This document shows, piece by piece, positions 2,806 through 58,382 of a DNA stretch of 64,000 nt (positions are counted from its first letter, which is position 1; each line of letters begins with the position of its first letter). The position numbers and the translations under genes are program-made. The stretch is taken from the NCBI RefSeq assembly GCF_032191835.1, contig NC_083240.1, forward strand, positions 34,844,001 to 34,908,000, written 5' to 3'. The notes beneath the pieces are model-generated. The model worked only from the letters and a program-made list of their open reading frames with translations. It searched no databases and was not told where the DNA came from. Source of the stretch: Heteronotia binoei (lineage: Eukaryota).

Positions 2806-2923
2806 GTCTAGGGGACGGCAGCTTTGCTGATGGGGTGGGGGGTTAGTAAAGGAAGACTGACCATAATGGAACTGACTTGTGTATGGATTTGGCCCCTTTA
2901 GAGGCTCGGCAGACACCTTTATC

Positions 2924-5900
2924 TCAGCTGGGCTGTTGCAGCCGAAGACTCTTCCTCCTGCCTTTCCTCTTTTTCTGGGAAGGGGTTGGCAAAGGGTGCA
3001 ACGAGGAGGGCTGCGCGGTGCCCGTTTTCTTGGTCCACGCGCCAGCTGGCTCGCCGCTGAGGATGGCGTTGAAGGTCTCCTCCTTGGCCACGGAGAGCTT
3101 CTGCCCTCGGAAAGCCCCCTTCCCCAGCCCTTGCACGTCTAATGGCTTGACAGAGCCAGCTCCCTTGGACACCTTCATGCCCTTCTTCTTCCCCTTCCGG
3201 CCTTTGCCCTTTCCTTTACGCCGCTTTGGAGCGGAGCCACTCGGCCTGGCTTGGGTACTGGCAGCGGTGGTGGACTCTCGTCTGGGAGCTGCTGATGTAG
3301 ATGTGGTTGATGGCCGCTGCGTGGCTGGGCCGTCGATTACCTGCCCGCCGTAGTCGTACAGCACCGGCTCTTGGGCCACAGCCACAACCACAGTGCTGTA
3401 ATTCTTGCACCTGCGAAGGAATGAGGAAGAAAGGGAGAGATGGTAGAAAACGCACCATGGGGGAAGAGAGTCTAGCTTGCATTTTCAAAATGACAAGTGA
3501 CTAGTCCTCATGTGGTGTCACGGACAGGCCCGCTGCAATCTCCCAAAGCCAAGGGGCAAGCAAAGGTTTCTGGGAGGAGCTGCAGCATCCCTCCCCCGTG
3601 ACTTGATGGCCAAAGGTGGAATGCGCCGAGAGTGTCAGAGTTAATGATTGCAAAATAGTGGGAAATAACACATTTGCCAGCCAATGGACTAGTGCAGTGT
3701 TTCAGTTCCACAGGACATGGGCTTTTGCTGCAGTAGTTTGTTGGTCCTTCTAGCCGAATGCTGTATTTTTCTGTTCCCTGATGTTCCTTCACTGGGCAAC
3801 TGGAGCCTGCGTACAGAGCTGGCACGCTCTCCCCACTTGCAACTGCTGGAATGGCCTTGGGTCAGCCATAGTTCTGGCAGAGTTGTCCTTGAAAGGGCAG
3901 TTTCTATAAGAGCTCTCAGCCCCAGCTGCCTCAAAGGGTGTCTGTTGTGGGGGTAGAAGAGAAAGGAGATTGTGAGCCACTGTAAGACTTGGAGTGGAGA
4001 GCAGGATATAAATCCAATATCTTCTTCTCTATCAAAGAGTTTTACTCAGCTGTGAGGAGAGTGAGCCTTTCTGCAGGTGTGAGCAGAACCCTAGTGACTA
4101 TAAAATGCGTCTCCATGCAAAGTGAAGACACAGAGACGCTTAAGCTCTGATGTAAGAGAGCCAGTTTGGGGTAGTGGTTAAGTGCAGCTCCTCCCAGAAA
4201 TCTTTGCTTGCCCCTTGGCTTTGGAGATTGCAGTGGGCCCTGTCTGTGACGCCACATGAGGACTAGTCACTTGTCATTCTTTTTAGCCCCCAGCTCACAG
4301 AAGGATGGCCCCAGAGCAAACTAATTGATGCAGTAGCTCACAACTTGAATGCCAGTAGCTCAGAAAGTAGAATTTTTGCTCACAAGACTGCGGCTTAGAG
4401 GGAACATCGGTCTTTGTGAGAGCCAGTTGTGGTGTAGTAGTTAAGAGCAGCAGACTCTAATCTGGAGAACCGGGTTTCATTCCTCACTCCTCCTCCCCAT
4501 GCAGCTGGCTGGGTGACCTTGGGTCAGTCATAGTTGTCTCCAAGCTGTTCCGAGCCAGTTTGGTGTAGTGGTTAAGTGCATGGACTCTTACCTGGGAGAA
4601 CAGGGTTTGATTCCCCACTCCTCCGCTTGCAGCTGCTGAAATGGCCTTGGGTCAGCCATGGCTCTTGTAGGAGTTGTCCTGGAAAGGGCAGCTGCTGCAA
4701 GAGCTCTCTCAGCCCCACCCACCTCACAGGGTGTTTGCTGCGTGGGGGGGGGAGTAAAGGAGATCGTGACCACTGTGAGATTCAGAGTATAGGGTGGGAT
4801 ATAAATCTAATACCATCATCATCTTGCTTGCTGCAAATTGGCCTCATCCTGCTTTGACTTACTTCTGATCAAAACCTCGGCTCTTTCTGCCTGCCCCAAG
4901 GCCACTTTGATGACCCATTTTTTCCCCAGGCTATTTCATCGGCCCTCCCTGCTGTCGCCATCCCCGCTGGAAGGGCTGGGGTTGGGGAAAACCCACTCAC
5001 CACACGTAGAGGTAAGGTTCCACGCATTGCTTCTTGTGGACGAACTCAAAGCAGGGCACCTGGATGACGTTGAAGAAGGCCTGGCCCACCACTCGGGAGG
5101 CTGTGTCGTTCACCTTCCGCAGGCAGGCCTTTAACCTGGCGGGGGGAGGGACAGAAGAGCTCTTGGTTGACAGTCAGCCTCAGCCTTGCCCCCAGCTGGT
5201 CCTTACGGGTTCTTTAGGGGAGAAATCATACCACCTCCAGGTACCTGTCCAAGGTGGCTTGCAAGCAGGGGTGGAATTCTAGCAGGAGCTCCTTTGCCTA
5301 TTAGGCCACACCCCCTGATGTAGCCAATCCTCCAGGAGCTTACAAAAAAGAGCCTTGTAAGCTCTTGTAGAATTGACTGCATCAGGGAGGTGTGGCCTAA
5401 TAGGCAAAGGAGCTCCTGCTAGAATTCCACCCCCGCTTGCAAGATATAACAAAGCCTTAAGAGAGATCAATGAAAGCCGAACTTTAAATCCCCAGCCCAG
5501 TCCTTGTTAGGCCTCTCGTCTTGGTTCCAAAAGCTCCTTGGCCATGATCCCTCCTTAGCCCAGGGATGTCAAACGTACGGGCTGGGGGCCAAATCAGGTT
5601 CCTGGAAGGGTTCCTAAGGCCCGCAAGCAAGTCTGCTTTTTCTCCCTCTCTCTTGCATCCTTCTATGTCACAGCTTGCTTTGCCAGGCTTGCTCAATCGC
5701 ACAGGAGTTACAGAACAAAGCCTCTATTTTCTCCATTGGCTGAGGCTCCCCCCATGGAGAGGAAGGAGAATTTGCTTTGCCAGGCTCTCTCAATCACATA
5801 GCAGAGCTACTGAGCCAAGCCTCTTTTCCTTCTATTGGTTGAGGCTCTGCCCTCTCATCCCCAAGGAAGGGAGGGGAAAAGCCAGAGTTTCCTTTGCCCA

Positions 5901-8900
5901 GTTTCCTCGATCATAAGGGAGAAATACAAAATATTTAATTGTGTTTGCATGAAGTTTATATCACCACTATTCTGGCATTACATTTTATGACACACATATC
6001 CCAGCCCAACAAGGTCTTATTTATGTCAGATCCGGCCCTCATAACAAATGAGTTTGACACCCCTGCCTTAGTCTTTCTCTGCCTAAAGAACATGAGAAGC
6101 CATGTTGGATCAGGCCCATCCAGTCCAACACTCTGTGTCACACAGTGGCCAAGAAACCCCAGGTGCCATCAGGAGGTCCATCAGTGGGGCCAGGATACTA
6201 GAAGCCCTCTTACTGTGCCACCCCCAAGCACCAAGAATACAGAGCATCACTGCTCCAGACAGTGAATTTGCAGAACTGGCAACCATAAAAGGCTAGTTTG
6301 GCCTCAACCATATGGTTTTGCTCAGTGGTAAAATATCTCCAGATAGCCCCATGGCGCAGAGTGGTCAGCTGCACTGCTGCAGTCCAAGCTCTGCTCACGA
6401 CCTGAGTTCGATCTTGGCAGAAGCTGGGTTCAGGTAGCTAGCTGGCTCAAGGCTAACTCAGCCTTCCATCCTTCCGAGGTCGGTAAAAGGAGTACCCAGC
6501 TTGCTGGGGGTATAGATGACTGGGGAAGGCAATGGCAAACTACCCCATAAAAAAGTCTGCTAAGAAAACATCCTGATGTGACATCACCCCATGGGTTGGA
6601 AACGACCCAGTGCTTGCACAGAGGACTACCTTGACATTTTTAAAATATTTCCTGTATCTGGCATTACATTTTATGGCACACATGGCCTAGCTCTCTGATC
6701 TGGCCTCATAACAAACGACACCTCTGTTCTAAGCTGTGCAGCTGAGCGGACGCTCATTAACCCAGGAAGCCCCGCTCAGCAGCAATCTGGAACCATGCAG
6801 GGCTTTGCGATGCCCATAGCTCATTTTAAGATGACAGCAGTTACATTCTACTCAGGATGTGAGGGGGCTTAGAAGGAGCCTGGCCCGCTACTCCTGCTCA
6901 CCTCTTGTCGCAGTCGCAGTGGCTGATGGTGTGCCAGCGGAAGTTGCGGTACCCAAACTTCAAGGTGAAGGGGTGGATGACATCTTGGCAGTGGTCGTGC
7001 TCCCGGCAACACCTGTCTGTCTCCCGGTGCTCCCCTGGAAGGATGGAGAAGGGAGGCAGTGCAAGGAACCCTCTGAGCCGAGTGGGCAACCTACTGGCCG
7101 GCCCCTTGTCCTGGGCGAGGCCACCCTCTCTAAGCCAATGATCTTTGAGTTTTCCAGACCTACTGGGCTCCAATCACAAAGCATCACAGTCATGTGACAG
7201 GAAGATGGGGAGCCGGAATTATGACTCCACTAGTGTCAGAGGCAGGGGAAAGAATTAGACCTTGGACAGCAGGACTCATCCTGTCTGGAGGAACCAGGCC
7301 TCAGATTCAGCAGGAGCTCACAGGAGCACAGCTCCTGAACCTTTGTGAGGATTCTCCCTTTTCCTCCCCACCTACCTTGTCCATTGAATAGGAGATGCAA
7401 CTGCATAACAATCCCGGGATTAGGAGAGCGGGCAGCCAGCCAGCCACCAGGGACTCTGCCATGCCCCCAGAAGCCCTCATCAACCCCTGGAGAAGCCCAT
7501 GCCACCCTTTCTCCACTTCTTATGTGGCTTGCTGGCCTTCTGACTGGGTGCAGGCGGCCCAGGAGAGCCCCAGGAGAGCAAGAACTGCTTGGGCTGGCTG
7601 AATCTCTAGCCAGTCCAAGCAGGTCTCACTCGCCCAGGGCTTTCCTTTCTTGCATTGGGTTACTTTTGGTGTGGGGTGGCGGTGTATGCTAATGAGCAGG
7701 GCCTTTTTTGTAGAAAAAGCCCAGCAGGGACTCATTTTCATATTAGGCCACACCCCCTGACATCACCATTGTTTAGCATAGAGCTTTTTTGTATGAGAAG
7801 CCCAGCAGAAGCTCATTTGCATATAAGGCCACGCCCCTGGTGTCGAGCCAGCCAGAACTGTGTTCCTGCTGAAAAACAAGCCCAGCTAATGAGTTATACT
7901 AATAAGCTCCACCTATTTTTCTGCAAAACGACCCCTGGGAGGAACAAGCCAATGGTCATGGAGGAATCCTTTCCTTTCACTGACTCTCCTGCCATTCTTC
8001 TCAGGGTGTGTGCACAATGATGCAAGAGATGGCACTTTGCTCTTCACGCATGGACGCAAGCAGCAGGCGCTCTCCCAAAAACATGGGCCTGAAGGGGGCT
8101 TCTGACCCACAGGCTGAATACTACTGCCCTAAGGCCTGCACGCTCGCCCTTCTTTCCTTCTTTCTCTCAAGCCATCCTGCAATCTCAACTGTGAAGCTAG
8201 TGACACCCCAACATACCACCAGCACCCTTCCCAATTAGCTTGGGTTGCCAACCTCCAGGTAGGCCCTGCAGGTCTCCCAGAATTGCAACTGACCTCCGAA
8301 CTACAGAGATCAGGTGCCCGGAAGGAAATTCTTCCTCTCTCCGGCTTTATAAGCCCACTGAGCCCGCCTCCCTTTGCTCTATCCTCAAATCTCCAGGAAT
8401 TTTCCCAGTCTGGATTTGGCAGCCTTATTGTTGGCCCTTCCTCAAGGAGCTTGGCACCTCCAGGGGGAGGCATCACCCACAGCTATAGAAAGGAAGGGAA
8501 AGGGGCTACTGGGGAAAGCTCTTACTGGAAGACACGTCTGTCTTTAACATGCCGCCGGGCTCTTGTCTTATTCTGACTGAAGGTTTTTTAGCATTCTGCA
8601 AGGGGGAAGCTTTCTTGTTGAAGGTGTTCTCTCACCCCGCCCCAAAAATAACCATCGCTAGGTGCTATCATGCCCTGACTTGGACAGCCCTGGTTAGCCT
8701 AGTCTTGTCACATTTTGGTTGGCCCTAGTTAATATTTAGGTGGGAGACCACCAAGGAAGTCCAGGGTTGCCAGGCAGAGGCACAAACCACCTCTGAACAC
8801 CTCTTGCCTTGAGAAACAGGCAGAGTTGCCATTCAGTCATCCGGGACTTAACAGCAAAGGGGAAAAAAAGAGAAGCGCTGTCACATGACAGAACTGATCT

Positions 8901-10716
8901 CTGCCGTTTGCAAAATGTGTTCAGGTGGGTGGCTCTGTTGGCCTGAAGCAGTAGAACAAGAGTTGGAGTCCAGGGGCACCCAGAAGGCCAACAAAGTTGA
9001 ATTCTGGGTAGAAGCTTTTGTGTGCAGGCATGCTTCTGATGAGCCAACATGGCTACCCCCCCCTGACCTTATCTGAAGAAGGGCATGAACACGAAAGCTT
9101 CTCCCCGGAACAAAATGTTGTTGGTCTTGAAGTTGCCACTGGACTCAAACTCGTGTTCTGCTGCTTCAGACCAAATCGAGTACCCACATCAATCTCTCTG
9201 AGCCAGTGCATGCACATGAAGGCTTATACCAGGGGTGGCCAAACTGTGGCTCAGGAGCCACATGTGGCTCTTTCACACATATTGTTTGGCTCTCAAAGGC
9301 CCCACTGCCCTGTTGGCTGGCAGCCTGAAGAATGCATTTAAAGTTGCTTTCTTTCTACCTCTACCTCCCCCATCTGTTTCCTTCCTTCCTTCCCCCTCCC
9401 TCCCTCTCTTACAGCTCTCAGACATCTGCCATCCATGTCTTGCAGCTCTCAAACATCTGATGTTTATTCTATGTGGCTCTTACATGAAGCAAGTTTGGCC
9501 ACCTCTGGCTTATACCCAGAACTAAACTTGAAGGTGCCATGGGACTCAGGCATTGCAAAATTTGTGGGAAGGTTTCTTTTCAATGCGTGATGCTTTCAAC
9601 GTTGCAGCGGGGCCATCCTGAACTCTTCGAAGCTCTTCGACGGCCGTGAACGTCAACGGGCGTAAACGCAGCCAGGATGGCCCTCTGGCGGGGCAGAGAG
9701 TGTTTGTTTTCCATGGGAAATGGGGCGCAAGAGACACACCCTCTTGGAGGTCTTGCTCTCTCCAGCCAGCAGAATCCCCCTTCTTCCTCCTGAGCAGCTT
9801 TCCTCCTGGCAGGGAGGAAGACATATGCCAGGGGTGGCCAAACTTGCTTAATGCAAGAGCCGCGTAAAAGAAACGTCAGATGCTTAAGAGCCACAAGACA
9901 TTAATGACAGATNNNNNNNNNNNNNNNNNNNNNNNNNNNNNNNNNNNNNNNNNNNNNNNNNNNNNNNNNNNNNNNNNNNNNNNNNNNNNNNNNNNNNNNN
10001 NNNNNNNNNNNNNNNNNNNNNNNNNNNNNNNNNNNNNNNNNNCTTTAACATTAAATGCATTCTCCAGGCTGCCAGCTGCCTTGGCTTGGAGAAGTGATTG
10101 AAAGAGACAAATGCCTCCTCCAAGCTGGCCAACATGGCGGTGGAGACTTTGAGAGCCACGCGATGTGTGTAAAAGAGCCACATGGGGCTCTCGAGCCACA
10201 GTTTGGCCACCCCTGACATATGCCAACTCTCCCCGGCTCCCCGCGCCCCGTCCCTCTCCAAGTCTCCAGGCGCTCCCTCTTCTTACCCAGCTGCTCGTAG
10301 CTCTCGGCGATGTTGCCGGCGCCGCACCACAGCGTGCCCGGGTAGGTGAAGCCTCGCTTCGTCCGCCGTCGAGGGGAGCCGCCGCGAGGCTCCGGCGGCC
10401 GGCAGGCCGCTTTGACCGCCTCCAAGTCGGGGAAAGCCGCCTCTTGCCGCCGCCGCTCCAGTCCCCTGCAGCGACTCAGAAAGGCGCCCAAGCCCGGCGG
10501 CTCGAGGGCAAGGCTGCAGGCGCTCAGGCCGCCCTCTCCGGGCTCCCAAGTGGCGCTGAGGAGCTCCCGCCCGTCGGATGCCTGGAAGAGGAGCCGCCCG
10601 TCGCCGTCCAGCGGGCTGCGGAGGGTGCAGAGGGCCGGCCCGCCCCTGGCCAGCCCCAGCCCCAGCCCCAGCCCGGCCGCCACCAGCGCTAGCAAGCGCA
10701 GCGCCCCCCCGCGCAT
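2924..10716 (-). CDS. PROCA1: PROCA1 orthologue; secreted group III phospholipase A2-like protein, 394 aa, 4 exons
   Basis: Exons 10716-10287, 7034-6902, 5135-5001 and 3410-2924, all GT-AG, total 1185 nt in frame. Signal peptide (MRGGALRLLALVAAGLGLGLGLARG), RRRTKR site, GFTYPGTLWCGAGN Ca2+ loop, DRCCREHDHC, HCDCD, WCKNY and a Lys-rich tail. Position next to RAB34 matches recalled human synteny. Confidence 0.88.
3489..4278. repeat. 96-bp inverted duplication in PROCA1 intron 3
   Basis: 3489-3584 is the reverse complement of 4183-4278 with only a few differences. Not seen elsewhere in the window. Confidence 0.88.
4552..4825 (+). mobile_element. Squam3-type (Ther1/MIR-derived) SINE; neighbouring copies at 3826-4030, 4156-4187 and 4418-4550
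   Basis: tRNA-like head GAGCCAGTTTGGTGTAGTGGTTAAG, body GTTGTCCTTGAAAGGGCAGCTGC and a (CAT/CTT)n tail. Family name is recalled. Confidence 0.8.
9230..9507 (+). mobile_element. hAT MITE family B
   Basis: TIR CAGGGGTGGCCAAAC, TSD GCTTATAC. Copies at 9828-10215 (TSD ACATATGC), 29923-30724 (TSD GATCAGAC), about 36118-36798, about 37085-37300, 41305-41738, about 54771-55069 and 57937-58229. Confidence 0.88.
9913..10042. other. Assembly gap (N run); others at 30388-30548 and 41388-41550
   Basis: N runs, each at the low-complexity centre of a family-B MITE. Confidence 0.95.
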
Positions 10717-21687: not shown

Positions 21688-24195
21688 ATGGACTTGCGCC
21701 GTGTTGTCGCCTCCCAGGAGCGAGGCTGGTATCTGCAGCTGATGGCGCCCAACGTCAAGGGGCCCGGTTATGCCTGGCTGGACCCCTCCCGTCTCTACTG
21801 CCACCCTCAAGTAAGGACTGGGAGCGGGGAGGGAGAGTCACAGTGCAAGGGGGTGGGCTGCTGGGTGGGAGCCGCTCTAGAGTGAGCCGGAGAGCCCCCT
21901 GCAGAAAGAGAAGCATTCCTCCTCTCCAGAAAAACAAGGAAGGACTAGGTTGATAGGTTGGGCCCCTTTGAGTGCTACAGCTGGCAGGGTGCCTTGAGGG
22001 CTTGCCCAGGGCAGGCCCTGCCACGGAACAAACTAGGCGATCGTCTAGGGTGCCGAATTGGCTGCCCCCATGTGACTTGGTGATGTAATCAGTGCGAGGG
22101 GGGCGGGGCGCCAGAAGTTTGCCTTGCCTAGGGTGCCGGACAGTCTAGGGCCAGCCCTATGTTTGTCTCTTGGGTGTCGCTGCACAAGGGGAATTCTGCC
22201 CCCCGGTTGGTTTCGTCCCTGAGTGGCAAAGGTGGGTATGAAAGGGAAGAGTCCCGGTTTTCTGTTGCATAGCGGGCTCAGGCGGTCTAGCAAATAGGAG
22301 GGCCGCTGCCAACCTTTCGACTGGCCCTCTGAGCTGCAGGGGATTGTTTTAATGTTTGCAGGGCAGGCGGCTGTCAAAAGCCAAAGAGCGACGAAGGTTA
22401 TTTGTCCTTGTTGGTTGACTCTCCCGCCAGCGAGTTTCTTTCATTTGAATTTGGATGCTTCTTGAACCCCTCCCCCGCTCCTTCCCCCAATTTTACCAGG
22501 CGTTGCAAGACTGCATTGAGGACTTGGTGCAGCCGTTTCAGGATGAGGCCATTGACTTGGTTGCTGGGATTGATGCGATGGGCTTCATTTTAGGTAAGCT
22601 TCATAGGGTCACCTAGTCCAACCCCGGTCCCTCTGTTCCACATGGTGGGGCTTAAAACTCAAGGCAGAGCTCAATCAGGGAGCAGGTGTTGTCAGGCAGA
22701 TGCCTCTGAACATATTCAGAGTGCATTTTTTCTTAGGGGCGATTCCCCACTACCACCTGCTTAGCATTCTTAGGACTGTGAAGGACTCTGTCCCGGGGCA
22801 AGTCTTCCAAGCAGAATGGAACCCGACTCTTGCCCTCCAATCAGAGATGTCAGCTTCTTTGGAGGCCCTACTTTTGTGCCATTCTTAGCAATCAGAAAGG
22901 TGGTTCCCATCCCTGAAAAGGCTTCATTGGAATCAGAGCAACAGCTCAGTCTGCAGACAGCTCTGGGGCAGGGCCGGAGGAATCCTGCTAGGTCCTTTTG
23001 CCGGGGTCGTCGGGTGCTAGAGATGTGAAGGTGTGACTCTCCATGATCTTATCCACTCACGCTTCGACATAGGAGATGATACTGGATTTATATTCCGCCC
23101 TCCACTTTGAATCTCGGAGCAGCCTACAATCTCCTTTACCTTCCTCCCGCACAACAGACACCCTGTGAGGTAGGTGGGGCTGAGAGGGCTCTCACAGCAG
23201 CTGCCCTTTCAAGGACAACTGTGCAAGAGCTATGACTGATCCAAGGCCATTCCAGCAGCTGCGAGTGGAGAAGACTGCAGCCCTTCTCTCTGAATCAGAG
23301 GCTTACAATCTCCTGTATCTTCTCCCCACACAACAGACACCCTGTGAGGTGGGTGGGCTGAGAGGGCTCTCACAAGGACAACTGTGTGAGAGTTATGACT
23401 GACCCAAGGCCATTCCAGCAGCTGCAAGTGGAGGAGTGGGGAATCAAACCTGGTTCTCCCAGATAAGCATCCGCACACTTAATCACTATACCAAACTGGT
23501 TGCTCTCCCCTCAGGTGCTGCCATTGCCAGCTTCCTCCAGAAGGGGTTTGTGGCCATCCGCAAAGCCGGGCACCTGTGCGTGGAGACCATCACTCAGCCT
23601 TACAGGGATTATTCTGCCCGTGACAAGCTGATGGAGATGCGGATGGATGTCATCGTGCCAGGTGAGCCACTGCCATCGCAGCCACGCACCGGAACCACAG
23701 GGATGGGACAAAGCGCCTACTTGCCCGATCCACCACCCTAAATGCATGGATAGCCCCTGTGCACCCCCTGGATTTACTGATCTGGCCCACTTGAAACATG
23801 TGGAGGCAGGGAGGATGGAACAGCTGGTACGCTAACACAGCTTTGGCGGTGTCTTCTTCTGCCAGGCCTCCGAGTCTTGCTGGTGGACCAGTGGGTGGAG
23901 ACTGGGGGAACCATGCGGGCTGCTGTCCGGCTGGTAGAAGAACAAGGAGGCGTGGTGGCAGGTATGGAGAAGGGGGCATTTGGCCAGCGACACCCCCCCT
24001 CCCAGGCTAGTGCTGATTGCTGCCTCCGCTTCCTCCCCACCCCCGGCAGGAGTGGCTGCCATCTGCATCGAAGATAGCGAGGGAGGCTCTTGGCTCAAAG
24101 GGAACTACAAGTGGGCCCACTGCGTCCCCTCCCACCTGATGCCCCAGTTCAACGCCCACTACCTGGACTCTTTCCAAGCCTTTGAAGCCAGATGA
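21688..24195 (+). CDS. Adenine phosphoribosyltransferase-like type I PRTase, 201 aa, 5 coding exons
   Basis: Exons 21688-21810, 22500-22593, 23515-23661, 23866-23961 and 24050-24195, all GT-AG, total 606 nt in frame. APRT-like motifs LVAGIDAMGFILG, IRKAGHL and VLLVDQWVETGGT. AATAAA at 24289-24294. Confidence 0.88.
22012..22157. mobile_element. Short GGCCCTG-terminated MITE (family F)
   Basis: CAGGCCCTGCCACGGAACAAACTAGGCGATCG...CTAGGGCCAGCCCT. Second copy at about 31335-31503. Confidence 0.6.
23085..23497 (-). mobile_element. Two tandem Squam3-type SINEs, antisense in APRT-like intron 2
   Basis: Reverse-complement copies at about 23085-23272 and 23278-23497. Confidence 0.8.
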
Positions 24196-26517: not shown

Positions 26518-29500
26518 TCACTGGCAGCATTTGGCATGGCGTCTCTTCTCGGTCAGGTACAAGTCCCGTTCGTCGCTAGCAATCCCTGGAAGAGACGGTG
26601 CAAGGCATGATCTCAGCAATGCAGAATCCAATCCAAATCCTGTGATGCACATCCAGGCCTGTAGCTACAGTGGGGCCCAAGGGAGGCCCATCCTTTCAAA
26701 CCCCCCTTCCATTGGAGGGCCTCCAATCTGTCCTCTTTGGTCACCACCACTCTGAAGAAGTTGTAACATCGCTGCCGGTCTCTCTGTCGTGAGAGGGGCA
26801 CATAAGAAAGGGGTAGGGGGAGCGGAGCTGCTGTAACTACTCAGGTGAAGGGAGGTTGGCTTGTGGAACTCAAGGCAGCCTGCAGTACCAAGAGCATGTG
26901 GCCATCAAACCTGGCCCCTGGCCCCCACAAACAACAAATCTTGCAGTGGGCCTCACCAAACATGGGGAGGGACGGTGGCTCAGTGGTAGAGCATCTGCTT
27001 GGGAAGCAGAAGGTCCCAGGTTCAATCCCTGGCATCTCCAACTAAGAAGGGTCCAGGTAAGTAGGGGTGAAAAACTTCAGCTTGAGACCCTGGAGAGCCA
27101 CTGCCAGTCTGAGTAGACAATACTGACTTTGATGGACCCAGGGTCTGATTCAGTATAAGGCAGCTTCATATGTTCAAATCCTGGCTACCACCCTGTGCAC
27201 ATCCCTGTCTGCAAGGCCCTGCGTCTGGCCCAATTCTGCAAAGAACTGCTGACTAGGACCACTAGATGTCACTCATGTACCTTACAAGCATTAAATAACA
27301 ATTTATTCTTTACAAAAATCCAATCTCTGTCTTGTCTGGTTTGTGGTCAGAACCAAAATATTACAATGAACCAATGTGGGAAGAGAAAAGCACAATGAGA
27401 TACAGTCCCAAAATTTCAATAGTCTCCCAATAGGAGAGCCGGTTTGGTGTCGTGGTGAAGTGTGCGGACTCTTATCTGGGAGAACCGGGTTTGATTCCCC
27501 ACTCCTCCACTTGCACCTGCTGGAATGGCCTTGGGTCAGCCACAGCTCTGGCAGAGGTTGTCCTTGAAAGGGCAGCTGCTGAGAGAGCCCTCTCCAGCCC
27601 CACCCACCTCACAGGGTGTCTGTTGTGGGGGAGGAAGGGAAAGGAGATTGTGAGCCGCTCTGAGACCCTTTGGAGTGGAGGGCGGGATATAAATCCAATA
27701 TCTTCTTCATCTTCATCTTCTTCCCTCCAGTAGTATCACAATTTCTGATGTTCCACTTGACGTGCACACGTGAAGGGGAGTGGACTCATGCAGAATCTTG
27801 AAAATCCATAAGAAATTGTGATGCTACTGGAGTGAGACTGTTGAAACGTTGGGACTGTATCTCATCGTGCTTTTCTCTTCCCACATTGGATGATTGTAAT
27901 ATTTTGGTTCTGACCACAAAGCAAACAAGACAGACTGGATTTTTGTAAAGAATAAAATGTTATTTTAATGCTTTTAAGAAACATGAGTGGCATCCGGTGG
28001 TCATAGTCAGTGGTTCCTTTCTCTTTTTTTTGTGATTCTGCTTGCACACTGGCTTCCCCCTCTTTCTTACCAATTCTGCAAAGGGCGAAAGCAGCACAGG
28101 GGATGCCACTGGGTTTAGATTTCAGCATCCGGAGCAGGTCAACATTCATTTCGGGTTCTGTTTTTAAAGCAAGCGCCTCAGCCTCATAGCTGTAAAGCTG
28201 CACATGGAATGAGCAGTTGTGCAGCTCCCCGTTTTGACACAAAAACCACCATGCTCTTTTTCCTTCTCCCTTGCGCAAATCAAACTTGTCAGTATTTTAA
28301 TACTATTTTCTATTTCCTCAAGCCAGATTTTTTCCCTCTTAACTCTATACAGCTTTTAAAGTTATTTCCACCCACTGCATATAGCTGCTGTAAAAACGGC
28401 ATTAAAAAGAAGCCAACCGTTAAAAAACATCAGCGAGAACGGTCAAAAACAAAAGAAAACAGGCAAAATTTGTACTTGCATATGAGTGGGTGGGCAATTG
28501 CTGCTGCCACTGCAGGGGGCGGTGGAGACACTGGCCACAAGTTCCTACTGTTGGGCCTGTAGAGCCTCTCCCTCCCCAAACAACTGTCAGAACAGACCAA
28601 AGAATGCAAAACTATGCAAAATGCCAAGATGACGCTTGCTCAAAAGTCCACAGGGACCCCTGTGCTAGCTTCCGCAACCTGTATAATTTATACAAGGACC
28701 AAAATTGGGGGGCAGACCACAGACTACGCAAAGCCTGTCTTATGAGGTCAGATCGATGTCAGCTGCACACTGCCCCCAGGAGGCAAAAAGGTTCTAACCT
28801 CCGCCCCATGCGAGAGAACAGGGCACGATCTGGGGCTGGCTGTCCTCACGCAGCACGGCACTTACGCACAATGTCGCCAATCCGGCGAGCGCTACTCTTC
28901 TCCAGCTCTGCCAGGACGCTGCCCTCAAAGGTCTGCGCTGCCACTCGGAAGAAGAATTCCCGCACGTTCTCCCCTGTCAGGAAAGGGCAAGGAGGAGGAG
29001 AGAAATCATTTGCCCAAATACCACTAACATGTGAGTACAATGACCATGCAGGGCAATCTTAAAGAACGGCTTTTTTTGTAGCATGAACTCCTTTGCATCT
29101 TAGGCCACACCCCCTGATGCAGCCAATCCTCCAAGAGCTTACAGTAGGCCCTGTACTAAGAGCCCTGTCAGCTCTTGAAGGACTGGCTACATCAGGGGGT
29201 GTGGCCTAATAGGCAAAGGAGTTCCTGCTACAAAAAAAAGCCCTGCTAAAGCATTAGGGATGCTGTCAATCTGCCAGGGACTGATAACAGTTTCCTACAG
29301 CAGTAACTCAGCATTGGCCACAAAGCACTTCCCCCACCTTCAGCAGCCACATGTGGGTGGACATCTTGGGAAGAGGCAGGGATGGAATTCTAGCAGGAGC
29401 TCCTTTGCATAATAGGCTACACACCCCTGATGTAGCCAATCCTCCAAGAGCTTACAAAAAAGAGCCTTGTAAGCTCTTGGAGGATTGGCTACATCAGGGG

Positions 29501-32500: not shown

Positions 32501-35500
32501 GGGGAGAGGTAAAGGAGATTGTGAGCTGCTCTGAGACTCTGAATTCAGAGTGAAGGGCGGGGTATAAATCCAATATCATCATCATCTCCTCCTCCTCACA
32601 AGAAGCAATGAGAACACAGATAGGGCCTCTGTCACTTTTAAAAGCTCAATATTCACTGGCCCATGGAACAGCAACTGGCTGAAAAGAGCCATGGGAAAAA
32701 AGGGAGCAAAAAGATCACTGTCCCACTACTGTTGTTGCGTGCATATCCTGTGGTAAAAATGGGATCTACACACTCCCCTGTCTTAGCAGGTAAGAAATTC
32801 ACACAGCGGGCCAAAGTTCAAAGTTAATCGCCTCAGGGAGTATACTTGACGCCTCGGGGCGTTTTCGCACTTACCTTAAGCCGGAGCGACGTCCCTCTTC
32901 ACCGCGCAGCGTTTGCACGGTTTTCGCACTAATTGCTCCGGAGCACCTGGAAGAGCCGCAAAGTCCCTCGGCTTTAGCGTCGCAAATGTAAACCGCTGGG
33001 TTTACATTTGCGACACAAAAGCCGCGGGACTTTGCGGCTCTTCCAGGTGCTCCGGAGCAATTAGTGCGAAAACCGTGCAGACGCTGCGCGGTGAAGAGGG
33101 ACGTCGCTCCGGCTTAAGGTAAGTGCGAAAACACCCTCAGTCTCCATCCAACCTTTTTTCCTGTTGTCACCACTAGAGGTCAGAAAGGAATGGCTAAGTC
33201 CTCTAGGAATGCCCTTGGGTGCCACAATGCAACACCCATACCTTTCTTGGCAAGTGTTTTTAGAAAATGGGCAGAGCCAGATGGGGCTTTTGCCCTGCAG
33301 AGCTTCTGACTGGCCCTCGGAGATCTGATTGGCTGCACAGATTTATAAAATATCACTTCAGCAAGTGCACCAGGGATCTTCACTGTGTGACTGAGCACTG
33401 ACTGTAATTTGCTTGGGGGGGAAATTATTTGCTACCTCTGAATTGGCATTCCTAATAAATGAATCTCCCCAGTGAGGGAGCGTGCAGAGGTGGGGAGGGG
33501 AATAAAGGGCTCTACAATCCAGCCAAGCTGTAAAGTATTCAATGAAGCTGCCTTATGGTGAACTGGACTACTGGTCCACCGAAGTCAGTACCAACTGCTC
33601 AGACTGGCATCAGCTCTCTGGGGTCTCAGCTAGATTTATCACATCACCAACTGCTAGATCCTTTAATTGGATACACAGGGATTGAGCCTGGAACCTTCTG
33701 CATGCCAAACAGATGCTCTGGGGCTCATCCATGGCCCCTCCCCAAGCATGTGGCATGTCCAGACTTCTCCCTGTTGTCCCTCTAGTCTTCCTCCTCCTCC
33801 TCTTCAACTTGCCAAGCAAAAGGAGCCCTCCGCCACCCTTTATCCTTACCCAGCAACCTCCTGTCTATTCAGAGCCATCGTCTAGGCAGAACTGGGAGGG
33901 GCTGTAGCTCAGGGATGGAGCATTTGCTTGGTTTGTGGAAGGTTCCAGGTTCACTCCCCACCATCCTCAATGAAGGATCAGGTGGCAAATGATGCAAAAG
34001 ACCTGAGATGCTGTAGAGCTGCTGCCAGTCTGAGTAGACAATATTGACTTTGACGGACCTGCTGAATGCTTTTTGCATAGTTGTGGGTCTGCTCTGCCCC
34101 TCCTGGAGGAGACAATCACCAGTACTCACTCCTTGGTGGTGTAGCAGTTAAGAGCGGCAGGCTCTAATCTGGAGAACCGGGTTGGCTTCCCCCTTCCTCC
34201 TCCACATGGAGCCTGCTGGGTGACCCTGGGCCAGTCACGGTTCTCTCAGAACTCTCTCAGGCCCCACCTACTTCACAAGGTGACTGTGTTGGGAGAGGAA
34301 GGGAAGGCAATTGTAAGTCCCTTTGAGACTTCTTTGGCTAGAGAAAAGCAGGATATAAAAACCAACTCTTCTTGTTCTTCTTTGGAAGACCCTTTTGCCC
34401 CCAATCCCAGCCAGCCATTTATCCCACGGTGAACATACAAACTATTTTTGCAGCCATTCGTCTGACCTGAGTGGCGGTTTAAGGAAATCTCTGAGCACCA
34501 GCAGGGTACTGGTTAAATACACACAAACAGATCTCTGTGCTAGCATCTCACCTTGTGCTCCTCGGTAGTAGGTGGACGCAATGCACTTGAAGCGCTCCTG
34601 GCCGGCCGTATCCCACCTGGTGCGGGGTGAAGATGCAGCCAGTTAGCTCAAAGCCCCACGAGGGGCTGCAGCAATCAGGATGGCCACCCCATAGCAAGAA
34701 GCCCCCCAGGAGAGTTGCCCAAAGCGGGCAAAGGTTTTCAGACTCACAGCTGCAGGCTGAACGGAACCCCCAAGACCTCGAAGCGCTCCATCTCAAAGTC
34801 CACTCCAATGGTGGCTTTGTAGTTTTTGTCAAAGGTGTCTTTGCAAAATCTGGGGAGGCCGAGAGAGAAAATGAGACCCTGGACTCTGGCTTCTGCTCAC
34901 CCAATGCTTCAGGACTCCCTAAAGGAGCCATGCACCTGCTTCCCTGCCCCAGCCAAGTTTCTAGCTCATACGGCTATGAGGATGGGCAAGAAGTTAACAT
35001 TGTAGTTTGGTGTAGTGGTTAAGCGTGTGGACTCTTATCTGGGAGAATCGGGTTTGATTCCCCACTTCTCCACTCGCAGCTGCTGGAATGGCTTTGGGTC
35101 AGCCATAGCTCTGGCAGAGGTTGTCCTTGAAAGGGACAACCCCACCCACCCACCTCACAGGGTGTCTGTTGTGGGGGAGAAGATATAGGAGATTGTAAGC
35201 CGCTCTGAGACTCTGATTCAGGGAGAAGGGCGGGGTATAAACCTGCAATTCTTCTTCTTCAATTTTTGGATTTCTCAAAAACTGGCTTCTTATTCATGAG
35301 CTGTAGTTAGTCTCTTTTTTTTACACAGTGGTTTGTGTACGTTGTGTAGCAACAGATTGTTGTTGCCTTTAAAGGTCAGCCTGATGCATTTCAAAAAGCA
35401 ATTGTTTAAGGGGCATAGGAAGCCAGGCCAAAGAAAGTGAATGCTTCAGCCCTGCAAGCAAGGAAATTCAGGTCCGGTCTCGCCTCTCTGTTCTCTCGCA

Positions 35501-38500
35501 GTCCGAAGCAATGCTTCCTCTACGCAATGGAGTCTTGGGAGCAAAACTTCTACATCATGAGCTACTGGCATCCAAGCTGTGAGCGAGCAATTTGGCTGCT
35601 GCATAAATTAGTTTGCCCTGGGGCCATCCTTCCTGAGCTAAGACAAAAATGTGTGAGCCGGAGGCTAAAAAACTGTGAGCTAGCTCACACTAACTCAGCT
35701 TGGAGAGAACACTGATCAGGAGCAATCTTCCAGCTCCCTACACCTCCCCAGCCCACTGGCATTCACAGGTGTCCCTCTGAGTTTCCCGTCCCAAACAGCC
35801 CAGGGGGTTACCTGTTGATCAGACAGGTTTTGCCCACCGAGAGGTCGCCCACCACGATGATCTTGGATATTTTAAACCTGCCGAGTGAAAAGCAACAACC
35901 CGATTAGCTTCTCTTGGGTGGAAGGAGGAGCCATTCCCAGGAGCAGGAGGTGAAAAGCTGCCATCTGGACTCTGGCTCAGGGGAAGAGACCCTGTTCAGT
36001 CTGCAGAAGGTCCCAAGTTCAATCCCTGGCATCTCCAGCTCTCAAAGGATCAGGTCATAGGTGATGTGGAAGACATCCACCTGTGAGCCCGAGGTTGAGT
36101 AGACAATGCAGACTCTGAAGGGTGGCCGAACTGTGGCTCGGGAGCCACATATGGTGTTTTCACATATATTGTCTGGCTCTCAAAACCCCCACTGCCTTGT
36201 CGGTCAACTTGGAGAAAGCGTTTCTCTTTTTAAATCACTTCTCCAAGCCAAGATAGCTGGCAGCTTGGAGAATGCATTTAAAGTCCAACCTCGTTTAATA
36301 ATTTTAAAAGGAAGTACTTCTTCACCCAAAGAGTGATTAACACATGAAATGAACTGCCACAGACACAGCCAGCTTCAAGAGGGGACTGGATAAACATATA
36401 GAGCAGAGGTCCGTCAGTTGGTATTCGCCACAGCGTATTGTTGGAACTCTCTGTCTGGGGCACAGATGCTCTGTATTCTTGGTACTTGGGAGGGGCCACA
36501 GGGGGAGGGCTTGTAGAGTTCTGGCCCCACTGATGGACCTCCTGATGGCACCTGGTTTTTTGGCCACTGGGTGTACAGAGTATTGGACTGGATGGGCCAC
36601 TGGCCTGATCCAACATGGCTTCTCTTGTGTTCCTAAGTTAAAGTTGCTTTCTTTCCACCTCTTCCTCCCTCCCCCATCTTCTTGCCTTATTTCCCTTCTT
36701 CCCACATGCCCTCCCTTCACTCCCTGTCTTGCATCTTTCAAACATCTGACCTTTATGTGACTATGTGGCTCTTATATTAAGTAAGTTTGGCCACCCCGAA
36801 GGATCTAATTCCGTATAAGGCCGCTTCAAGTGTGAACAGACTCTGGGGTTTTCCCAGCCAAAAGGACTCTTGCCAATGAAGCTCCTGCAGCTGGTCTTGG
36901 ACATCGAGTCAAGCAGCCCCTCCCTGAGCAGACTTTAGGGCCTCCCAGAGACAGTGACGGGCAACTGGTTTGGGACCAGGCTCCGTCACTGCCTTAGAGC
37001 ACTGAGGGCACGGTGGTATATCTTCGCTGGACCCAAGACTACTGAGCATAAGGCGGAAGCTCCAGAGGCAGTCTACTTATCAACACCAAGTGCTCGGGAG
37101 GAGTGGCTAAACTTGCTTAACATAAGAGCCACATAAAATAAACATCAGATGGTTGAGAGCTGCAGGGAGGGAGGAAGGAAATACATGGAGGAGAGGTGGA
37201 AAGAAAGCAATTTTAACTTTAAATGCATTCTCCGAGCTGCTGTCCAACAAGGCAACGGGGACTTCAAGATCCACGCAATATGTGGGAAAGAGCCACCCCT
37301 GATCTAGAGAGCCAGTTTGGTGTGGAGAGCCAGTTTGGTGTAGTGGTTAAGTGCGGGCTCTTATCTGGGAGAACCGGGTTTGATTCCCCACTCCTCCACT
37401 TGCACCTGCTGGAATGGCCCTGGGTCAGCCATAGCTCTGGCAGAGGTTGTCCTTGAAAGGGCAGCTGCTGTGAGAGCCCTCTCAGCCCCACCCACCTCAC
37501 AGGGTGTCTGTTGTGGGGGAGGAAGGGAAAGGAGATTGTGAGCCGCTCTGAGACTCTTCAGAGTGGAGGGCGGGATATAAATCCAATATCTTCTTCTAGA
37601 GACTGTGCAGTTGCTTTCATGTTCTGCCAGCGCTTTTCCAGAGGCCCTTCTCAATGGAACATGGCTGGGCTTGTGCCACCTCACCCCTAAAACCCAGCTA
37701 GTTGCCAGCCTCAGGATGAGGCTAGAGATCGCCAGGGATCACAAATTTATTTATTTATTTGATTTACGTATATCCTGCCCTCCCCACCAAAGCAGGCTCA
37801 GGGCAGCTCAAACATAAAATCATAATAACAATTAAAACAATTATATTATAAAATCACAAATTCTACAGTTTAAAACAATTCAAATAGTTTTGGTGCTGAT
37901 CTCATCAGATGTTGTGTATTTCTGGTGGCGACGGCATTTCTCCAGATTCCTACGATGTAGGCTGCGCGTCAATTAAAAGCCAGCCAGAAGACAGCAGTCT
38001 TGCAGGCCTTGCGGAAATGAGCAAGGTCCCGCAAGGCCTTCACCTCCTCTGGTAATTGGTTCCACCAGTGGGGGGCTGCAACCAAGAAGGCCCTCTCTCT
38101 GGTGGTCTTTAGTTTGGACTCTTTCAGCCCAGGGATTACTAATAGATTTTGTGATCCAGATCGAAGTACGGTCTGGGGAACATGTGGGGAGAGATATCCC
38201 AAAGGTAGGCAGGTCCTAGGCCATGTAGGGCTTTAAAGGTAATAACCAGCACCTTGTAACGAATCCAGTACACTATTGGCAGCCAGTGCAGTTCCCACAG
38301 CCCCGGCTGTATGTGCTCCCACCTGGGAAGCCCCAATAGCAGCCTGGCCGCCACGTTCTGCACTAGCTGTGGTTTCCGGGTTCGGCACAGGGGCAGCCCC
38401 AAGTGGAGGGCATTAGAGTAATCCAAACTCGAGGTGACCGTAGCATGGATCACTGTTGCCAGGTCGTCGCACTCCAGGAAGGGGACCAACTGCCCCACCC

Positions 38501-54151: not shown

Positions 54152-58382
<4,231 letters not shown>

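Follow-up and report, generated by a model that had tools for sequence, protein, structure and literature searches.

Squamates have recruited group III phospholipases A2 (PLA2s), the bee-venom type of these enzymes, into their venom. PROCA1 is named as an interactor of cyclin A1. The described vertebrate relative of the bee enzyme is PLA2G3, which consists of a central S-domain flanked by an N- and a C-domain (PMC2708930) and which is processed to a fully active form containing the S-domain only (PMC7603386). The sPLA2-III passages of a 2020 review of PLA2 biology treat PLA2G3 under its group III heading, and the papers found with a mention of PROCA1 do not include this review. In the literature searched, placental PROCA1 figures only as a phosphoprotein and as an entry of sperm and testis proteomes, the pig protein being serine-phosphorylated in sperm; for human PROCA1 just the chr17 coordinates are given (PMC13125504), and in a chicken study an automatic pathway assignment puts PROCA1 under glycerophospholipid metabolism. 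Literature searches pairing PROCA1 with phospholipase A2 or PLA2G3 retrieved no discussion of PROCA1 as a phospholipase lineage. Here, the PROCA1 gene of the gecko Heteronotia binoei is compared with these systems. It lies in a stretch of 64,000 nucleotides of contig NC_083240.1 (positions 34,844,001 to 34,908,000 of assembly GCF_032191835.1), which is called the window below and to which all positions refer. The name of this gene hides the hallmarks of a secreted, convertase-activated group III PLA2 outside the placentals. The idea of PROCA1 as a phospholipase is modestly new, as the automatic names in UniRef already read 'phospholipase A2' for several orthologues.

Gecko PROCA1 probably encodes a precursor from which a convertase would release a secreted group III (bee-venom-type) PLA2. 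This reading is carried by the structure and orthology of the gene, the integrity of its motifs, their deep conservation, the homology of the N-domain and cleavage site with those of PLA2G3 and the splicing of exons 2 to 4 in a relative; secretion, cleavage, catalysis and a role of the tail would be its consequences. The core of the protein is the PLA2 domain (residues 122-260), with ten cysteines and two sequons. It starts, on the side of the predicted mature N-terminus, with GFT-YPGTLWCGAGN (residues 122-135), which includes the Ca2+-binding loop YPGTLWCGAGN (residues 125-135; 10312-10344, on the minus strand like the entire gene). W130, G132 and G134 of this loop correspond to W8, G10 and G12 of bee PLA2. 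Further downstream are CCREHDHC (residues 152-159; 6988-7011), with His156 at 6997-6999 and Asp157 at 6994-6996, and HCDCD (residues 182-186), of which CDCD occupies 6907-6918 and Asp186 6907-6909. The alignment with bee PLA2 (1POC) is ungapped through the active site, H34, D35 and D64 being the counterparts of H156, D157 and D186. W130, G132, G134 and D157 are invariant among 49 orthologues; both the Ca2+ loop and the Asp beside the catalytic His are hence present. The core cysteines between residues 131 and 234 (C131, 152, 153, 159, 183, 185, 192, 216, 225 and 234) follow the group III ten-cysteine pattern, and the first eight are in register with 1POC; the disulfide pairing is presumed. The sequons are NDT at residue 197 (5102-5110, exon 3) and NYS at residue 236 (3395-3403, exon 4).

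The fold points to the same family. In the AlphaFold model, helices 140-157, 183-196 and 199-211 and the hairpin 216-246 form a three-helix core with a beta-wing, and the sole significant Foldseek matches are bee PLA2 structures, headed by 1POC (top) and 8PKC, with a probability of 1.0 and a TM-score of 0.58 on the target. The whole protein scores 135 bits with the Pfam profile PF05826, far above chance at a cut-off of 22, and contains one PF05826 stretch. Every motif that the first-pass annotation had listed is indeed found: the N-terminal hydrophobic stretch, the prodomain (97 amino acids), the Ca2+ loop, CCREHDHC, HCDCD, the ten cysteines, the sequons, the linker and the basic block.

Upstream of the PLA2 domain, approximately residues 1-24 (10645-10716) form a predicted signal peptide with a basic n-region and a Leu/Ala/Gly-rich h-region, in which residues 8-18 are the most hydrophobic 11-mer of the entire protein on the Kyte-Doolittle scale. 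The subsequent pro-region (residues 25-121) has 97 amino acids and four cysteines. Most of it is the N-domain (residues 25-115; 10372-10644), a homolog of the PLA2G3 N-domain with the invariant cysteines C30, C67, C83 and C105. The AlphaFold model based on 49 orthologues gives this domain four strands and two helices, at a predicted local distance difference test (pLDDT) value of ~80-89. A model of the isolated N-domain, searched against 48,161 chains, gave matches to generic beta-meanders with a Z of 5.0 at best, and no known fold was identified. The pro-region ends with RRRTKR (residues 116-121), located exactly at 10354-10371 as had been claimed from the sequence at first sight, which fits the furin-type proprotein-convertase consensus R-x-K/R-R directly before G122. 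Among the 49 orthologues R118 and R121 are invariant and K120 is nearly so. In the model, RRRTKR is part of a low-confidence linker (pLDDT <50), a weak proxy for exposure. The R-x-K/R-R motif at the domain border is thus conserved, while convertase cleavage itself is a credible prediction: the dibasic site is invariant and is shared with PLA2G3, for which processing to an S-domain-only form is described. This processing (PMC7603386) provides a precedent for RRRTKR as an activation or maturation site.

By BLASTP, the gecko protein aligns to the PLA2G3 proteins of jerboa (P0215) and caecilian (P0207) over a stretch that begins at C30 and takes in the N-domain, the dibasic site and the S-domain. 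Moreover, the four N-domain cysteines and two arginines remain invariant once the orthologue alignment is enlarged by eight PLA2G3 members. PROCA1 and PLA2G3 are old paralogues with a common plan of N-domain, dibasic site and S-domain, and this sharing implies that the tripartite start of the protein predates their duplication. In addition, the C-domain of PLA2G3 in both P0215 and P0207 aligns weakly to the PLA2 core of the gecko protein (E 3e-5 to 4e-8). This C-domain contains a Cys-x-Cys, but the catalytic His-Asp and Asp are absent, and it looks like a degenerate second PLA2 repeat.

The features of the gecko protein are conserved over a wide phylogenetic range. Orthologues named PROCA1 by NCBI are found in sharks, rays, chimaera-like and ray-finned fishes, coelacanth, lungfish, amphibians, squamates, turtles, crocodilians, birds and marsupials, and the PLA2 domains of the named orthologues are 68-95% identical to that of the gecko. 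The catalytic domain is ~70-76% identical between sharks and tetrapods. R-x-[KR]-R stands directly before G-[FL]-T-YPGT in 181 out of 188 PROCA1-type sequences, and all 159 sequences of this type having a complete domain (159/159) keep the His-Asp and the CxC-Asp. The invariant columns in 49 full-length orthologues include C30, C67, C83, C105, R118, R121, the glycines of the Ca2+ loop, H156, D157 and D186. PROCA1 evolves more slowly than PLA2G3, as illustrated by the mean domain identity in the same five species (75.7% for PROCA1 versus 55.4% for PLA2G3). The intact state of PROCA1 is in all likelihood ancestral, which is supported by the retention of its motifs from sharks and chimaera to marsupials; on this point the first-pass annotation, which proposed an ancestral PROCA1 of the intact secreted-PLA2 type, holds up, activity being deduced from the motifs.

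That the gecko gene is a PROCA1 orthologue is supported by its NCBI identity, its neighbours and a phylogenetic tree. The tree was made with IQ-TREE from 52 domain rows, which did not comprise anguimorph venom PLA2s. In this tree, the jawed-vertebrate PROCA1 proteins form one clade (94/75; 95% of the bootstrap trees) with an internal order near that of the species tree, and the window protein is nested in the squamates (98/88). In the best tree, a branch with weak bootstrap values (43/99) separates PLA2G3 from the other sequences, and the lamprey and hagfish sequences are part of an open polytomy and assignable to neither paralogue. Judging from representatives of an HMMER search and from cluster names, PLA2G3 is present in rays, sharks, coelacanth, gar, teleosts, frogs, caecilians, tortoise and jerboa. 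Both genes occur together in five species, namely in Leucoraja, Latimeria, Lepisosteus, Megalops and Mixophyes, which makes PROCA1 a lineage distinct from PLA2G3. The distinction between both genes that had been suggested beforehand is in this way borne out by the phylogeny. Within the window, three exons of a RAB34-type gene, with P-loop, switch I and DTAGQE (34445-35903, minus strand; Pfam Ras), and the exons of RPL23A (55178-57396, plus strand; PF03939 with 96 bits, PF00276 with 56 bits) were found. RAB34 and RPL23A are also the neighbours of human PROCA1 on chromosome 17 (17q11.2), in the same gene order. Synteny was judged from the neighbours inside the 64,000-nucleotide window.

The coding gene runs on the minus strand from 10716 to 2924 and was modelled from splice-site landmarks. 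It has four exons, GT-AG borders at all introns and 1185 nucleotides of coding sequence, i.e., 394 codons and a stop. Exon 1 (10287-10716) starts with the ATG at 10716 and encodes residues 1-143, ending after the first base of codon 144; the signal peptide, the N-domain, the dibasic site and the Ca2+ loop are all contained in it. Exon 2 (6902-7034) encodes residues 144-188, including CCREHDHC and CDCD, and exon 3 (5001-5135) residues 188-233, with the third helix, sequon NDT, the AFFN motif and the start of the beta-wing. Exon 4 (2924-3410) provides residues 233-394, i.e., the end of the PLA2 domain, sequon NYS and the tail, followed by TGA at 2926-2924. The PF05826 profile is matched in collinear order by exon 1 (profile positions 1-20), exon 2 (23-64) and exon 3 (67-95). 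A word search with the open frame of exon 1 retrieved the NCBI entry 'protein PROCA1 [Heteronotia binoei]' of 394 amino acids (P0001). By tblastn this protein is 100% identical to the window over all four exons, the match of exon 1 being complete save for the read-through beyond its donor, and the window holds one copy of PROCA1. The public protein was used for analyses of the whole protein, and the exons were searched singly, not joined. The gecko gene is therefore correctly annotated as PROCA1 and, for the window alone, an ordinary gene.

Intron 1 (7035-10286) contains an assembly gap, a run of N at 9913-10042, 245 nucleotides beyond the donor of exon 1 and 2.9 kb ahead of exon 2. As the gap is intronic and far from both exons, the reading frame is unaffected. 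At the junction of exons 1 and 2 no residue is missing in comparison with the Pfam profile, bee PLA2 or orthologues from independent assemblies, such as that of Paroedura, which also counts 394 amino acids. The same intron harbors two copies of a ~300-bp foldback repeat in opposite orientation, at 9221-9516 and 9817-10224, and the gap lies in the middle of the second one. The flanks of the gap (9823-9912 and 10047-10224) match consecutive parts of the complete copy at 9221-9516, inverted and in the right order, so that both sides belong to a single repeat copy. Compared with the complete copy, a piece of ~78 nucleotides of the repeat interior is missing. The position of the gap inside a foldback copy is probably the reason why the assembler broke at 9913-10042. 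In intron 3, several copies resembling short interspersed nuclear elements occur at 4160-4790 and 3800-4000, with tRNA-related heads and sequence of the 'ccagtttggtgtagtggttaag' type. These copies draw very deep contig coverage from sequencing runs.

Splicing is documented by a contig from a relative. The search for RNA runs yielded none from Heteronotia binoei and two runs only, at a word share of 0.04. A contig of 1327 nucleotides from one of these two, a run of a related organism, aligns to 2921-3407, 4998-5133 and 6900-7035, joining exons 4, 3 and 2 at the predicted GT..AG borders of the minus strand. It is 93-96% alike to the gecko sequence in exons 2 and 3 and ~88% in the tail exon, and the lengths of its insertions and deletions add up to multiples of three. 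A close relative thus produces the spliced exon 2-3-4 message and preserves its frame. Of the splicing predicted by the first-pass annotation, the junctions between exons 2, 3 and 4 have thus been recovered, and the one between exons 1 and 2 falls outside the stretch that is covered.

The C-terminal tail (residues 261-394) has an isoelectric point of 12 and is disordered in the AlphaFold model. It begins with a variable linker rich in Ser, Thr and Pro (residues 261-294; 3227-3328), which is modelled as disordered, followed by polybasic block 1, KRRKGKGKGRKGKKKG (residues 295-310; 3179-3226), where a block rich in Lys, Arg and Gly is found from shark to marsupial. Polybasic block 2, KKRKGRRK (residues 379-386; 2951-2974), which was absent from the first-pass annotation, has a K-G-R-R core that is likewise conserved from shark to marsupial. 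Between both blocks, in a tail that is otherwise disordered, lies the short motif EETFNAILSGEP (residues 343-354; 3047-3082). From the orthologue alignment, its consensus is F-N-x-[IV]-[LM]-x-[DG]-E-P, conserved from sharks to marsupials. The linker between these conserved elements varies freely among orthologues. The constant position of the blocks and of the motif argues for a function of some kind. It may be tethering to anionic surfaces or heparan sulfate, trimming by convertases as in PLA2G3, or sorting or interaction through a motif; these roles fit equally well.

As a comparison of orthologues (P0039, P0085, P0111, P0115 and others) shows, the N-domain is not equally retained in all lineages. 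Geckos, amphibians, fishes and sharks have it intact with its four cysteines, as do most of the other lizard models examined. Marsupials, birds, the alligator model and snakes have a shortened N-domain or none, with retention of the signal peptide and the dibasic site. In birds, for instance, a poly-Leu signal peptide is followed by a short propeptide and R-x-R-R. Some of the short models may be annotation artefacts of GC-rich first exons.

For mammals, a distinction between marsupials and placentals is needed. Marsupial PROCA1 has a clear signal peptide, a short propeptide and H-R-x-K-R, followed by GFTYPGTLWCGAGN, CCRxHDQC and CDCD. The proposal that PROCA1 was inactivated in mammals is not supported in this form by the marsupial protein, which keeps the signal peptide, H-R-x-K-R before GFTYPGT, CCRxHD and CDCD. 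As these elements are kept, any inactivation would be placental at most and would postdate the split between marsupials and placentals. Placental PROCA1 is presumed here to have no signal peptide or Ca2+ loop and to carry substitutions at the Asp positions, the putative motifs of the human protein being CCWRHKQC and HCNCN. The best 120 matches of a word search with the PLA2 domain were all non-placental, and a query with a marsupial-specific sub-region returned 4 proteins, none of them placental. Among the best 150 representatives of an HMMER search, all those that were not fragments had their motifs intact. That placentals are missing from lists in which marsupials score ~1e-63 fits strong divergence and proves nothing. 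PF05826 is detectable in atlas clusters named PROCA1.

Other explanations of the gecko protein have to be weighed against the reading as a secreted enzyme. It is improbable that the protein is secreted and PLA2-folded but mainly non-catalytic, for example a PLA2-receptor ligand or a lipid-binding factor, in which case conservation would reflect binding surfaces. Such a role would suit a domain that is conserved over its whole surface, with 76% mean identity and long invariant runs, and a placental PROCA1 that is a sperm phosphoprotein for which no enzyme role is mentioned in the literature searched. However, the invariance of the catalytic and Ca2+-ligand residues in 159 out of 159 sequences is hard to explain without selection on catalysis, and the paralogue PLA2G3 is an active enzyme (PMC7603386). 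An intracellular protein, as placental PROCA1 is thought to be, is less probable still: its N-terminal stretch would not be used as a signal peptide and its polybasic blocks would be nuclear localization signals. Fourteen position-conserved cysteines, N-glycosylation sequons and a dibasic convertase site fit the secretory pathway instead, poly-Leu signal peptides are very evident in the orthologues of birds and marsupials, and a PLA2 fold that depends on disulfides would not form in the cytosol. On the side of an intracellular location are the resemblance of KKRKGRRK and KRRKGKGKGRKGKKKG to classical basic localization signals, the name as a cyclin A1 interactor and the serine phosphorylation of pig PROCA1 in sperm. 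Least credible of all is a PLA2G3 orthologue or a lineage-specific venom-type duplicate misnamed PROCA1. PLA2G3 does have the N-domain, dibasic site and S-domain plan in common, and squamates did take up group III PLA2s as venom components. Yet the tree nests the gecko protein in PROCA1, with a squamate, sauropsid and tetrapod order that follows the species tree, RAB34 and RPL23A are the neighbours, the gene is a single copy in the window and the degenerate second PLA2-like repeat is missing. PLA2G3 identity was tested as such and found unsupported, the protein neither clustering with PLA2G3 sequences nor containing a second repeat.

Some points also count against gecko PROCA1 being a secreted and active enzyme. 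The signal peptide was called from hydropathy and the N-termini of orthologues. The Ca2+ loop is modelled at low confidence by AlphaFold, and Tyr87 of the bee enzyme is replaced by Phe, as it is in the active enzyme PLA2G3. The repeated shortening or loss of the N-domain suggests a role that is dispensable, and the polybasic blocks of the tail could equally be signals resembling those for nuclear localization, cleavage sites or glycosaminoglycan-binding sites. The contig that joins exons 2 to 4 stems from a run of a related organism, whose RNA label is presumed, and not from this gecko, and the exon 1-2 junction is outside the read-aligned stretch (4.2 kb). Finally, the literature searched holds no biochemical data on any non-placental PROCA1.

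If the protein is indeed a secreted PLA2 precursor, its maturation can be pictured as follows. The signal peptide would direct entry into the secretory pathway, where the 14 cysteines would form disulfides, presumably two in the N-domain and five in the catalytic domain, and where the two sequons would possibly be glycosylated. A furin-type convertase would then cut after R121 and remove the N-domain of ~97 residues. This would generate a mature N-terminus G-F-T-YPGT, one residue upstream of the start of mature bee PLA2. The mature domain would bind Ca2+ via the loop with W130, G132 and G134 and via D157, and the H156/D186 dyad would hydrolyse the sn-2 ester of phospholipids. The disordered tail may tether the enzyme to anionic surfaces or may be trimmed at basic sites like the C-domain of PLA2G3. 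In evolutionary terms, the balance of evidence tilts toward PROCA1 as a second ancient vertebrate group III secreted PLA2 (sPLA2), whose origin, shared with PLA2G3 and possibly due to a whole-genome duplication, would precede the radiation of the jawed vertebrates. PROCA1 would be more constrained than PLA2G3, still work as an extracellular enzyme from fishes to marsupials and have turned into an intracellular, non-catalytic sperm and testis protein in placentals only. Most vertebrates would thus probably carry an unstudied second enzyme of the bee-venom-type PLA2 class.

Should this be true, the standard mammalian sPLA2 list omits an enzyme of most vertebrates, and PROCA1 is a dated case of the change from enzyme to pseudoenzyme. 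Confirmed activity would make zebrafish, Xenopus and chicken models for a form of extracellular lipid hydrolysis that mouse genetics cannot reveal. The contrast between marsupials and placentals would then date the switch from enzyme to pseudoenzyme, and the sperm defects with which mammalian PROCA1 is reported to be linked would appear in a new light.

Besides PROCA1 and the neighbours mentioned above, the window contains an APRT-like gene (21688-24195) between PROCA1 and RAB34. Between this gene and RAB34 there is an open frame (27865-28296, minus strand) of 144 amino acids, with a protein-like composition and no Pfam match.

Compared with known systems, gecko PROCA1 shares its locus with placental PROCA1 by name and by the neighbours RAB34 and RPL23A. 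It would differ from the placental protein in that the signal peptide, the Ca2+ loop and the Asp residues are all intact. With the group III PLA2s of Heloderma and other anguimorph venoms it has PF05826 in common, and a hagfish relative bears an NCBI name taken from the Heloderma isozymes. The motifs of anguimorph venom PLA2s resemble PLA2G3 more than PROCA1; a literature search found no paper linking Heloderma with PLA2G3, and there is no sign that the gecko gene plays a part in venom. Bee venom PLA2 (Api m 1; 1POC) has the same Pfam family, fold, and catalytic and Ca2+ residues, and the mature N-termini, as predicted for the gecko, are within one residue of each other. In contrast to PROCA1, the bee enzyme has a short propeptide, no C-terminal tail and a Tyr at position 87 where PROCA1 has Phe; the identity is ~36%. 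The likeness is most extensive with PLA2G3, which also has a signal peptide, a four-cysteine N-domain and R-x-K/R-R before a bee-venom-type S-domain, as well as the Ca2+ loop, the His-Asp, CxCD and the cysteine pattern; within a species, the domains of both proteins are 44-53% identical. PLA2G3 nevertheless constitutes a separate jawed-vertebrate clade at another locus, and its long C-domain holds a second, degenerate PLA2-like repeat, whereas PROCA1 ends in a disordered Ser/Thr/Pro-rich and polybasic tail.

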